Assembly: GCA_965649825.1 (NCBI GenBank)
Contig: OZ287698.1
Span: 449,949 to 513,948, forward strand
DNA length: 64,000 nt
Direction: 5' to 3'
DNA from: Penicillus capitatus
Taxonomy: Eukaryota > Plantae > Chlorophyta
The position numbers and the translations under genes were made by a program. Shown here one piece after another: positions 50,615 through 56,454 of the stretch (within the stretch, counting starts at the first letter, position 1; each line of letters starts with the position of its first letter). Under the pieces are notes generated by a model. That model saw nothing but the letters and a program-made list of their open reading frames with translations, was not told where the DNA came from and did not search any database.

Positions 50615-51652
50615 TCATTTTTTCTCCATGGCCTTGGCCCGAACGAAGATGACGCCTGCACACAGACCAACCAGCACGCTCAGTACATTCACCGCCGTGG
50701 TTTTCACGCGGAAGACCAGCCATCCCAGAATAGCCGTTGGAATTTTGTTCAGCGATCCTGTCATGACGAACGTTGTCGATGTCGTGGCTCCCATAAAACG
50801 AAGACTCGAATAGCTCACGGCAAATCCCACAAACCCGCTCATGAAGAGCGCGATCAGAAACCATGGATTGTGGATGGCTGGCTGAGACCAAATGATCTGC
50901 GATTCGCCCACAGTGACGATCAGCATGAGCAGCCAAGGTAGACCCAGGAGATGATTATAGTAGACTTTGGTAATGTCTGACATTCCTTTCTTGGATGTCA
51001 CATCGTCCACTCTATTGAGGACGTTTTTCAGGTAGAGAGCATAGGCAGCCGTTACTGCACAGTTGAGGAGCTGCCATGTGTAACCGACAGGATGAAAAGA
51101 GAGATCCGTCATGCTTCCCACCACGGCCGAAAGGGCCATCAATGCCAGCGACATCCAGACACCCAGGACGTAATGCTTGCCGAAGAAATACATGTCTCCC
51201 AAGATCGTCAAGAGATTCGTGAGGTTTTTGAGCAATGTCACCATCGGGACCTGCAATGTCTTGAGTGCATAGAAACCGGTGCCGATCATGGCAACGAAGA
51301 GACAGTTCACAGGCCACCAGATCTTGACGATGCGCCAGTCTAGTGCATCGCGCTGTACGATATTGAACTGTCCAGCGATGTCGATCAGCAGCACGGTCAT
51401 CATAAACTGGCACAGAAGCAGAGCATTGGGGGCATCGAATTCGAATGACGAGGCCAGGAGTTTGTTTGTGAGAATCATGCTGAAGGAACAGATGCAGTAA
51501 GCGATGCCTGATGTCAGCTCCGACACTTTGTGCTTGTTTGCGTAGTTGTTGCTTTTGGGAGAAAAGGTCAATGCGTCGAAGGGCTTCACGGGGACGACCT
51601 GTGTCTCGCTTTCGACCTCAACGCGCAGAGATTGCCCCGTTTCGGCAATCAT
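50615..51652 (-). CDS. Golgi GDP-mannose transporter (GONST/Vrg4 family), paralog a
   Basis: SMILTNK, WWPVN, KNLTN, YYNHLL and the GSLNK motif; intronless. Confidence 0.92.
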   Translation of the reverse strand: MIAETGQSLRVEVESETQVVPVKPFDALTFSPKSNNYANKHKVSELTSGIAYCICSFSMILTNKLLASSFEFDAPNALLLCQFMMTVLLIDIAGQFNIVQRDALDWRIVKIWWPVNCLFVAMIGTGFYALKTLQVPMVTLLKNLTNLLTILGDMYFFGKHYVLGVWMSLALMALSAVVGSMTDLSFHPVGYTWQLLNCAVTAAYALYLKNVLNRVDDVTSKKGMSDITKVYYNHLLGLPWLLMLIVTVGESQIIWSQPAIHNPWFLIALFMSGFVGFAVSYSSLRFMGATTSTTFVMTGSLNKIPTAILGWLVFRVKTTAVNVLSVLVGLCAGVIFVRAKAMEKK

Positions 51653-51681
51653 TTTAGTGTCTCGGGTGCTTTTCAATGCCG

Positions 51682-53497: not shown

Positions 53498-54780
53498 ATG
53501 GAAGATCAATTGACACTTTTTAATCAGTATGAGAGCGAGTACTGCAACAAGTCCACAGACGTTGCCCGCAAGATTGACGGTCTATCATCCCTCGTCGGCG
53601 GTACGTCACATCTCTTCTCCCGCTACTCAACCTTGTTTGTACGTTCGGGTAGATTCGCGACGCCGCAAAGTCTCGGAGCTTGAGTATGAGATACGGGAGG
53701 CGGAACAGATTGTATGTTCGTTCGGGAGATTTCATGACAATGGAGTGAAGATGCTGCTGTAGATTAAACGCATGGAAATGGAGGCACGTAGCTTTGCTCC
53801 AGACAAGTCCCAGCAAGTTCTTGGCAAGATACGCGACTACAAGAGTGATCTACAAGGACTGAAGGACTCCCTCAAAGGTGCCTCCCGGGCGCCAGCTTCT
53901 TCCGGACAGAGTGCCCGCAAAGACATGGTAAGCGTGCGCGTATCGGCGATCACTCTTCTCAAAGACACCTGTCACATCATCCCAGGGACTTGGATCGGAT
54001 TACTACTCCACCACCTCTTCACAAAGAGACACGATGCTGCGTGTGACGGAACAGGCGAATCGCTCAAAGGAACGACTGCAGTACGGCAGACAGCAGCTCG
54101 CCGAAACAGAGGTATGCCTTCGATAAGACATATACGCGTTAGATACGCGGGTAGATAGACGCTTGCATTTTTGTTTGTTCGCTGGGCGATGATTGGGAAT
54201 GCGATGCCCTGGTGTTGTTTGCATCTATCGTGTCTGCTTGATCTTTGGGTGTGGTAGGCGATGGGCGCAAGTGTTTTGGAAGAACTGTCACGTCAACGCT
54301 CTTCCTTACATCGATCCACCGCTAAACTACAGGACGCTCACGAGAGTGTCAAAGACTCACAAAACACTCTTTCTCGAATGGCCAAACGATCCAAATGGTT
54401 TTTCTGGCCATGATAAACCTGCCCTCTTATCCTTTCTGCTTTCCATTTCATTGTCCCGCATTTCGTACCGCAACCAACACCCATTAGAAAACGCTGTTTC
54501 TGAGATTCTTTGAATGTGGGGTCCTGTATACGTTGCGAGGCACACGTGCTGTGTGTAGGATATCGGTGTGAGTATTCTGCAAGATCTTTCGCGTCAGAGA
54601 GAGACGATCGTCCGTGCAACGGATACACTTCATGGAGCAGGTGAGAACGTTGGCGCCGCTCGGAAGATTCTGGGATCCATGAGTCGCCGGATCACAACAA
54701 ACAAGATCACGTTGGCCATCATTGCTCTCTTTCTTCTTGTAGCCATCATCCTCGTCATTTATTTTAAGATTGCCAATTAA
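53498..54780 (+). CDS. VTI1: Qb-SNARE VTI1 (membrane-anchored isoform)
   Basis: FNQYESEYC, MEMEARS...YKSDL, QLAETE|DIGVSILQDLSRQRETI...ILGSMSRR followed by a TM helix. Confidence 0.93.
54258..54413 (+). CDS. VTI1: Alternative VTI1 terminal exon (SNARE C-half without TM anchor)
   Basis: Phase-0 acceptor ggtag| matches the donor at 54112. It encodes AMGASVLEELSRQRSSLHRSTAKLQDAHESVKDSQNTLSRMAKRSKWFFWP*, homologous to exon 54559-54780. Confidence 0.75.
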   Translation, partial: AMGASVLEELSRQRSSLHRSTAKLQDAHESVKDSQNTLSRMAKRSKWFFWP

Positions 54781-55217: not shown

Positions 55218-56454
55218 ATGGCGTCTGTGAACAATAAAGAATCGTGAGATCGAGAATCGATCTGAAAACGCTAACACAGCAGAAAAGCTCTATCGTACGA
55301 CACACTCAAACGCATCCACCGCGTCCTTTATTGACAGCCATGATGTGACAAACGCATCGATAGCTGACGACACGAACACCAAGCAGAACCTGCCCGAAGA
55401 CCACGCCATCGGAGACATGTCTAAGAATGCCGGCGATGATGGAGGCGAAGATGACGCGAGATACCCCGGCATGACGGTGATACCTATCGAAACGGTCGTC
55501 GAGAAGCCGGCGGCTGATGCCGTGAAGAAGAGACCGTTGATACCACCCCAAGTACCGGCTGGCTTTGCATGGTGTTTCTGCTCCTTCTCGATGATGTTGA
55601 CGAATAAACTGTTGCTGTCTTCTTTTGAGTTCAACGCTCCATTGTCACTGGTGTTCATCCAGTTCATCATGACGGTCGTTCTGATCGATATGGCAACGAT
55701 GATGAACGTCTTGGTCCGCGATCCACTCGATTGGCGTATCGTCCGAATCTGGTGGCCCGTGAATCTCATCTTCGTCGGTATGATTGTCTCGGGATTCTAT
55801 ACACTGAAGACATTGCAGATCCCGATGGTCACACTTTTGAAGAATCTCACCAATTTGCTGAGCATCTTGGGAGATCTCCTTGTCTTTGGCAAGCGATACT
55901 CGTTTGGCGTCTGGGCTTCGTTGGCACTCATGACGCTCTCTGCCGCCGTCGGCGCCGTTACCGATCTGCAGTTTGATCTGGTGGGGTATCTATGGATGGC
56001 TATCAACTGCATCTTGACCGCTGGCTATACTCTTTATCTCAAATTCGTTCTCAATCAAGTCGATGATGCGACGTCCAATAAAGGCCTCTCAGATATCAGC
56101 AAAGTGTATTATAATCATCTTCTAGGCCTCCCTTGGCTCCTGTTCTGTATTTTGTGGTTTGGAGAAGCGAGTGTCGTTCTGGAGCAGCCGGCGCTATACG
56201 ATTCGAATTTTCTCTTTGCCTTGGCTTTCAGTGGCCTTGTGGGATTTGGCCTCAGTTACTCGAGCATTCGGTTCATGGCCATGACAAATGTCACCACGTA
56301 CGTCATGGTGGGATCCTTCAATAAGCTCCCCACCGCTGTACTCGGATGGATTTTCTTTCAAGTCCAGACGACTGTGATGAATGTCGCCAGCGTCATCGTG
56401 GGGCTCTGCGCCGGGATCGTCTTCGTTCGCGCCAAAATCTCCAATGCAAACTGA
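55218..56454 (+). CDS. Golgi GDP-mannose-type nucleotide-sugar transporter, paralog b
   Basis: Colinear with 50615-51652 and carries GSFNK. Proposed exon 1 is 55218-55243, then intron 55244-55337, in frame with ORF 55345-56454. Confidence 0.9.

Follow-up and report, generated by a model that had tools for sequence, protein, structure and literature searches.

The 64,000-nucleotide (nt) stretch of Penicillus capitatus DNA analysed here (contig OZ287698.1, positions 449,949 to 513,948; hereafter the window, to which all coordinates without a locus name refer) carries on its plus strand, at 53498-54780, a five-exon gene for a Vti1-type Qb-SNARE, VTI1, and between the fourth exon and the last, anchor-encoding exon (exon B) lies a second, homologous last exon (exon A), which closes with its own stop codon and encodes no anchor. 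Vti1 is a core protein of endosomal, vacuolar and trans-Golgi network fusion, and it is usually regarded as obligately tail-anchored. We consider it likely that VTI1 has in exon A a genuine alternative ending that codes for protein, an ancient duplicate of the last exon which is reached from the same donor through a second acceptor and which gives an anchor-less Qb-SNARE.

Two endings of one Qb-SNARE gene

Exons 1-4 account for the N-terminal domain of Vti1 and for the first half of its SNARE motif (Table 1). The introns between them are of the GT-AG type and only 51-58 nt long, and the intron from exon 4 to exon B is long (447 nt) because exon A lies inside it. An exon 4 homologue with the ending QQLxETE is present in all related loci examined. 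The initial annotation of this DNA proposed two in-frame acceptors for the donor at 54112, and the coordinates and translations of both exons proved to be exactly as it gave them.

Exon A reads AMGASVLEELSRQRSSLHRSTAKLQDAHESVKDSQNTLSRM and then AKRSKWFFWP, followed by TGA and TAA, with LSRMAKRSKWFFWP as an example of sequence specific to isoform A. Exon B reads DIGVSILQDLSRQRETIVRATDTLHGAGENVGAARKILGSM, the juxtamembrane SRRITTNK, the anchor ITLAIIALFLLVAIILVIY and FKIAN before TAA, and its half of the motif is that of a canonical Vti1. In exon A the C-terminal half of the Qb-SNARE motif is complete from layer -3 to layer +8, with the zero-layer Gln encoded at 54294-54296 and the +8 Met at 54378-54380. 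The heptad register and the zero layer are kept in both exons, as had been claimed, since the layer residues are present in each and both isoforms pass the Pfam profile PF12352 (V-SNARE_C; 49.2 bits for isoform A and 62.4 bits for isoform B, cutoff 27.1); PF05008 (Vti1 N-terminal domain) gives 75 bits for either isoform, with a cutoff of 25.9.

The two predicted proteins part company at the anchor. That of exon B has a Kyte-Doolittle mean over 19 residues of 3.19, and in isoform A, which is 202 residues long, the maximum of the same mean is -0.51, so there is no hydrophobic stretch and isoform A does not have the C-terminal anchor by which Vti1-type Qb-SNAREs are recognised. It does not resemble a Qbc protein of the SNAP-25 type either (two motifs and a linker), because it contains one SNARE motif and stops 10 residues past layer +8. 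Isoform B finds its best matches among green-algal Vti1 proteins only, the closest being Caulerpa lentillifera g3425.t1 (76%), followed by those of Ostreobium, Bryopsis, Coccomyxa and Trebouxia, and exon B is 60-76% identical to the Vti1 of Caulerpa, Bryopsis, Trebouxia and Coccomyxa. Judged by this one gene, the DNA most likely belongs to a siphonous ulvophyte close to Caulerpa.

Table 1. Features of VTI1 in the window.
Feature	Positions	Strand	Description
VTI1 exon 1	53498..53600	+	ATG at 53498, starts MEDQLTLFNQYESEYCNK; inside the PF05008 match of the spliced product
VTI1 exon 2	53653..53711	+	GT/AG borders; 52-nt intron 5' of the exon
VTI1 exon 3	53763..53927	+	
VTI1 exon 4	53986..54111	+	N-terminal half of the SNARE motif, ends GRQQLAETE; common to both isoforms
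5' splice donor GT, common to A and B	54112..54113	+	GAG/gtatgc, phase 0
Proximal 3' acceptor AG, for exon A	54256..54257	+	ggtgtggtag/GCG; homologous acceptor used in mRNAs of relatives
Exon A	54258..54413	+	AMGASVLEELSRQRSSLHRSTAKLQDAHESVKDSQNTLSRMAKRSKWFFWP; no anchor; stop TGA 54411-54413, then TAA
Basic-aromatic tail AKRSKWFFWP	54381..54410	+	stands in for the juxtamembrane region and the transmembrane anchor
Spacer, exon A stop to exon B	54414..54558	+	145 nt; contains the distal acceptor AG 54557-54558 and TGTAT at 54525
Exon B	54559..54780	+	DIGVSILQDLSRQRETIVRATDTLHGAGENVGAARKILGSMSRRITTNK and ITLAIIALFLLVAIILVIY; zero-layer Q 54595-54597; anchor 54706-54762; stop TAA 54778-54780

Age, distribution and conservation of exon A

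Within the window, the peptides of the two exons show 40% identity over 43 residues (BLASTP E = 3e-11) and their DNA 50%, and as the third codon positions agree at 11 of 44, which is the chance level, the exon A copy is old. The two exons are adjacent, homologous and both joined in phase 0 from one donor, which is the arrangement expected of a tandem exon duplication. We compared the first 41 residues of the A and B exons of 11 loci in a neighbour-joining tree, in which the A exons form a single clade and every B exon falls outside it; the mean identity is 43% among A exons, 72% among B exons and 39% between an A exon and its own B exon. States specific to A are G-A instead of G-V at positions 3-4, R/K instead of S/T at position 40 (preceding the +8 Met) and loss of the motif LHGADD, which is invariant in B. 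In all 11 locus-derived A exons the layers are occupied by G/A (-3), I/V (-2), L (-1), Q (0), I/L/M (+1), A/S/T (+2), L/M/V (+3), A/T/V (+4), L/V (+5), S/A/G (+6), L/V (+7) and M (+8); this statement rests on the unfiltered set taken from the loci, the proteins selected by regular expression being a partly circular set that was used for tail composition only. The comparisons indicate that the A exons stem from a single ancient event in which the last exon was duplicated in tandem, probably prior to the divergence of the core green-algal classes.

The genomic Vti1 loci of relatives were scanned by tBLASTn and with a hidden Markov model (HMM) of the A-type exon, against which exon A of the window scores 82.4 bits, as high as the A exons of its relatives. 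Between exon 4 and the anchored exon, an A exon is found in Bryopsis sp. KO-2023 (L002 4871-5026; acceptor ttttcag/GAA, reading ETAVGILEELHRQRETIQRASDTMQTTDQELRGAQKILGRMGKRAKWWFWP and ending in RMGKRAKWWFWP before the stop) and in a Bryopsis-like Logan contig (L089) with the same ending RMGKRAKWWFWP. Further A exons are those of Trebouxia sp. C0004 (L001 3570-3713, ending in KRMSSWWSW), of Trebouxia sp. C0009 (L004 3383-3526) and, in the equivalent position, of locus L088 (ending in RMGRRFWPFW). In a metagenome scan that started from exon B, 80 loci came up, 16 of which have an A exon there (L008-L016, L018, L019, L053/54, L064, L068/69), several of these being near-identical copies; the same scan seeded with A-exon patterns returned no loci.

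A partial A exon (its first 23-29 residues) is fused to exon B in the gene models of Trebouxia C0004 (P0022, L001 2501-4003), Botryococcus braunii (P0019, Bobra.0395s0040.1) and Chlamydomonas incerta (P0041, KAG2443670.1), from which it follows that exon A is also present in the Chlorophyceae. Exon A is thus kept across the Ulvophyceae, Trebouxiophyceae and Chlorophyceae. The three models leave the A exon in its middle and continue into exon B, and we rejected the annotated part-A-plus-B proteins (250 and 289 residues) as real products, because the exon-encoded part of the SNARE motif would be present in them one and a half times and because the ad hoc internal donors differ from species to species; the fused models are probably a prediction artefact of the in-frame duplicate.

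Selection on exon A was estimated from the ratio of nonsynonymous to synonymous substitution rates (dN/dS). Between Trebouxia C0004 and C0009 the flanking intron cannot be aligned and exon A is conserved with mostly third-position changes, giving a dN/dS of 0.10 (dS 0.84) for exon A and of 0.02 for exon B. Pairwise values for eight Trebouxia-like loci are 0.04-0.15 at a dS of 0.2-1.1, and these ratios indicate that exon A is under purifying selection in Trebouxia. In the Bryopsidales pair L002/L089 the proportion of synonymous differences in exon A is 0.85, which is saturated, and that of nonsynonymous differences is 0.12; a dN/dS of 0.92 obtained for this pair was discarded as spurious, as it came from an ungapped comparison across an indel in the tail. 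With the same position across green-algal classes and the dN/dS values in Trebouxia, the earlier view of exon A as an old and maintained duplicate is well founded.

An exhaustive HMM search of proteins with the A-exon profile returned 878 matches, and the best 150 of the 878, mostly A-type, were listed. Among the matches listed, 66 anchor-less sequences stop no more than 16 residues past the +8 Met and contain Trp in all but a handful of cases, which are mostly B forms truncated at the end of a contig. The usual endings are M-G-R-W-W-x-F, M-S-S-W-W-S-W and M-x-K-R-x-K-W-[WF]-F-W-P. Tails near-identical to that of the window occur in Bryopsis (GKRAKWWFWP), in L089 and in P0055 (SDRAKWFFWP), and those of the metagenomic A exons include SSWWSW, a single W, GRRAKWFF, GRLWPFW, ARGWWPFGG and ASWMPWARRQD, each directly before the stop. 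The share of Trp is 24% in the tails, 0% in the SNARE cores and 0.5% in the B juxtamembrane regions, figures which are descriptive only as the set was preselected for aromatic tails. The replacement of the anchor by a short basic-aromatic tail therefore agrees with the initial annotation, both in the missing hydrophobic stretch and in the conserved Trp-rich end. On the Wimley-White interfacial scale, WFFWP sums to -5.5 kcal/mol and the whole tail of the window to -2.4 kcal/mol, and this composition, with three basic residues, would fit peripheral binding to an acidic membrane interface. The nearest known analogy is the basic, Trp-containing juxtamembrane segment of synaptobrevin.

Some further observations concern the loci themselves. 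The 5' neighbour of VTI1 in the window is an AMP-binding enzyme on the minus strand (motif FTSGSTGAPKGV). In Trebouxia (L001 852-2146) and Bryopsis (L002 1-2054) a Med20 gene lies head-to-head 5' of VTI1, a microsynteny which is kept across classes, unlike in the window. The pair of AMP ligase and VTI1 is flanked by two paralogous long open reading frames (ORFs), nucleotide-sugar-transporter-like and in opposite orientations (50615-51676 on the minus strand and 55345-56454 on the plus strand), which share SSFEF[DN]AP and LKTLQ[VI]PMVTLLKNLTNLL. In Elliptochloris bilobata (L005 3110-3166) the intron after exon 4 contains a partial second exon 4 peptide (RTTEHLERTGERITQGRQR), and exon B is split in two there.

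Probable choice of acceptor and rival explanations

Proteins in which a Vti1 N-terminus is directly joined to an A-type ending are found among the matches listed. One of them (P0133, 196 residues) is a full-length Vti1, the ORF of a Trinity transcript of Neomeris dumetosa (Dasycladales, Ulvophyceae), which passes from GQAMLNEAE at the junction to AEGVAILQQLHGQREQ and on to RKMEQRTKWWHIW, ending in KWWHIW and a stop. Two others, P0184 (194 residues) and P0096, come from Logan contigs of approximately 1 kb (L090 and L091, two sequencing runs), in which exons 1-4 stand without interruption, exon 4 runs directly into the A exon (GAGACCGAG/GCCACGGGC), and after the A stop come a 77-nt spacer, an intact anchored B exon and the 3' flank. 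The sole difference between the two contigs is a 17-nt segment bounded by a repeated CGCAG, that is, two alternative acceptors at the junction of exons 1 and 2, which means that they represent spliced RNA and not genomic DNA. As they are spliced to A with exon B downstream, the proximal acceptor is used in that alga and exon B serves there as 3' untranslated region (3'UTR).

The initial annotation had taken the terminal exons to be mutually exclusive, with a poly(A) site to be expected after 54413. Two homologous endings are indeed present, but the switch is probably a choice between acceptors, since the relative keeps exon B as 3'UTR in its A-type mRNAs and a mature message there does not contain one copy only. 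Altogether, evidence for the proximal junction comes from L090, L091 and P0133, and for the distal one from L006, L007 and many full-length B proteins, the two sets being from different species. By analogy with these relatives, the proximal acceptor would be used at some level in P. capitatus as well. What had been named as evidence that could overturn the prediction, an unused acceptor and an exon A without conservation, was not encountered on either count, as relatives have exon A and their spliced transcripts use the homologous acceptor. Exon A as a cassette with a donor past its stop was tried and rejected, because there is no conserved GT at that place in the Trebouxia set and because the spacer is retained in L090/L091.

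Two side observations concern splicing in relatives. Before the retained B exon, L090 771-790 (and the same stretch of L091) reads ctgcagTCGG/GAACTG, with no AG abutting the first B codon, and in this GC-rich alga a phase-0 join of exon 4 to B is not obvious. Further, P0024 (Caulerpa lentillifera g8092.t2), an alternative model of a second VTI1 paralogue, runs past QQLLETE into the intron and stops, which hints at transcript coverage inside the homologous intron.

In our preferred reading, the donor at 54112 joined to the distal acceptor (54558) would give the canonical tail-anchored Qb-SNARE, and joined to the proximal acceptor (54257) it would give a Vti1 of 202 residues that has the N-terminal domain and the first half of the motif in common with the canonical form and completes the motif with a different but fully competent copy of the second half, in which the zero-layer Gln and all layers -3 to +8 are kept. 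The switch would be a competition between two 3' splice sites, and the A-type message probably continues through the spacer and exon B as 3'UTR, as it does in the mRNAs of the relative. Isoform A would be a cytosolic or peripheral Qb-SNARE, able to enter four-helix SNARE bundles, with its aromatic tail placed in the membrane interface beside the anchors of its partners, and its mode of action may be closer to that of soluble Q-SNAREs which are recruited to membranes, such as Vam7 or the SNAP-25 Qb helix, than to that of an integral SNARE. Surface residues are not the same in A and B, and those of A evolve more quickly, so the two may have different sets of partners. In a reconstitution of yeast vacuole fusion, the anchor of the Qb-SNARE (Vti1) was dispensable for rapid fusion when the Qa-SNARE was anchored (PMC10398888), and thus an anchor-less Vti1 need not be inhibitory.

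This last point bears directly on the idea of an inhibitory decoy, in which the anchor-less isoform would occupy the Qb place without transmitting force and, as a dominant-negative or i-SNARE, would damp or redirect Vti1-dependent fusion in the way that tomosyn and amisyn do at the R position. An intact SNARE motif without an anchor and the differing surface residues of A and B would suit such a role, and anchor-less regulatory SNAREs such as tomosyn are an established class (PMC2639358); however, loss of the Qb anchor alone did not inhibit the yeast reconstitution, and the strongly conserved Trp-rich tail suggests a positive role in membrane contact that a simple decoy would not need, so we regard a decoy as unlikely. 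A different view of the message, with the same protein, is that exon A is a true alternative last exon with a cleavage and polyadenylation site of its own in the 145-nt spacer, A and B never standing in one mRNA. A CTGTAT element, which may be the poly(A) signal of this alga, lies approximately 110 nt past the A stop (54525) and a similar one 11 nt past the B stop (54791), and in Bryopsis the A-to-B gap is approximately 1.1 kb and the A stop is followed by A-rich sequence. On the other hand, the only A-type mRNAs that can be read (L090 and L091) keep the spacer and exon B, the 55-68 nt between the A stop and the B acceptor in Trebouxia leave little room for a 3'UTR and a poly(A) signal, and neither TGTAA nor AATAAA occurs past the exon A stop in the window, nor past that of exon B; we regard this arrangement as possible but rather unlikely.

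It is very improbable that the A acceptor serves unproductive splicing only, diverting pre-mRNA to an early-stop message with a long 3'UTR so that anchored Vti1 is lowered and the A peptide itself is unimportant. Approximately 370 nt of B-derived sequence would stand downstream of the A stop if the spacer is retained, and for several relatives only B transcripts were assembled, but a stop cassette would not keep 12 layer residues, a zero-layer Gln and a Trp-rich tail across classes, a dN/dS near 0.1 would be unexpected, and stand-alone anchor-less genes with the same ending exist, e.g., in Fennellomyces (see below). We give just as little credit to a dead pseudo-exon, i.e., an ancient duplicate that is functional elsewhere and unspliced in P. 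capitatus; exon A has been lost in some green algae, yet in the copy in the window the acceptor is intact, the frame is open, no layer residue is missing and the end is the family-typical KRSKWFFWP with its stop, and its HMM score equals those of the A exons of relatives.

Several results nevertheless weigh against exon A as a protein-coding alternative ending. The tBLASTn and HMM scan found no exon A in Coccomyxa viridis (L003), Elliptochloris (L005), L027/28, L033 and L062, despite the presence of an intron there, nor in many loci without an intron at this position, and exon A is therefore dispensable in some lineages. In a GC-rich clade (L088, L053, L064) the pairwise dN/dS of exon A is 0.6-1.8, on only 2.5-8 synonymous changes, which is indistinguishable from neutrality and at most hints at weaker constraint. 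Trebouxia-like and other Logan transcript contigs (L006, L007) were assembled with the B isoform only, and A is perhaps a minor form. The protein collection contains neither of the two isoforms of P. capitatus, a word-indexed search with the exon A peptide and the junction having found nothing, and a search of the word-indexed collection with the A-exon profile gave only short ORFs called on genomic contigs, none of them with the junction.

Anchor-less Vti1-like proteins and known SNARE systems

Anchor-less Vti1-like proteins are not confined to the core chlorophytes. Among the matches listed, endings of the form M-G/S-K/R-W-W occur in Pterosperma (P0081), in MMETSP proteins P0173 and P0075 and in contigs P0082, P0140, P0161 and P0123, some of them with divergent N-termini. 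Cymbomonas P0166 has only the start of an A-type motif (ATGANVLEELQRQRETI), as the deposited model reads on past the motif to a different end. The mucoralean fungus Fennellomyces sp. T-0311 has a stand-alone anchor-less Vti1-like gene (P0066, KAI8138686.1, L092 3001-3390) ending in KNMSRWFNFF and a stop, and reading of locus L092 found no anchored exon downstream of it; the annotated 110-residue model probably misses upstream exons, as an ORF with the start MTDQFVVLEKRLQ is found immediately 5' of this model. The proteins from outside the core chlorophytes may be one unrecognised SNARE subtype, and they may share their origin with the green-algal exon A or be convergent with it. More speculatively, and with rather low confidence, the Trp-tailed anchor-less Vti1 could be an ancient functional class of Qb-SNARE, present as a VTI1 ending in core chlorophytes and as stand-alone genes in Fennellomyces, Pterosperma, Cymbomonas and protists, with partners of its own, a fusion step that needs a recruitable Qb, and the tail as an interfacial wedge.

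For a protein usually regarded as obligately anchored, the results point to a conserved isoform under selection, in which half of the motif comes from a separate copy and a Trp-rich tail stands where the anchor is missing. The green algae, including the tractable Chlamydomonas, would offer a natural experiment on what the Qb anchor is for and on how soluble Q-SNAREs are recruited. In addition, the annotation of VTI1 across green algae needs correcting, as the present models predict chimeric proteins. No Vti1 isoform of this anchor-less, Trp-tailed kind is described in the plant, algal and fungal SNARE surveys (PMC7573729, PMC2639358) or in the literature searches made, the coverage of which is incomplete. 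The separate elements are already known, and what differs here is their combination in the Qb-SNARE Vti1, i.e., a duplicated last exon, a shed anchor and a conserved Trp-rich ending.

Compared with the Vti1/VTI11-14 group (Qb.III.b; yeast Vti1p, plant VTI11/12), isoform B is an ordinary member, with the three-helix N-terminal domain, a Qb motif with the zero-layer Gln and an anchor, and isoform A is the same as far as layer -4 and has a homologous motif, but with a Trp-rich end in place of the anchor. Soluble Q-SNAREs (Vam7, an unanchored Qc (PMC2639358), and the Qb helix of SNAP-25/SNAP33) are alike in that an anchor-less helix is brought to the membrane by other means, and some Qbc-like matches (P0164) begin the linker after the Qb motif with a similar M-x-K-W-F. 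Unlike Vam7 and SNAP-25, isoform A has no PX domain, second SNARE motif or cysteine cluster, and its sole candidate membrane contact is the tail, which measures 1-15 residues in the A-type sequences. Soluble syntaxin 3 (Stx3S) is similar in that a tail-anchored Q-SNARE loses its C-terminal anchor through alternative splicing (bioRxiv 10.1101/162958), although isoforms of this type (Qa) reuse the same SNARE motif and merely drop the anchor exon, whereas the A isoform of VTI1 (Qb) has its own diverged half-motif and a conserved aromatic tail. Exons 5a and 5b of SNAP-25 are also alike, being an ancient duplicated exon for part of a SNARE motif from which splicing picks one copy (PMC2581893). However, those of SNAP-25 are internal cassettes of equal length that differ in a few residues, while in VTI1 it is the last coding exon that was duplicated, one copy exchanged the anchor for a stop, and splicing apparently chooses between acceptors, with the distal copy becoming untranslated sequence.

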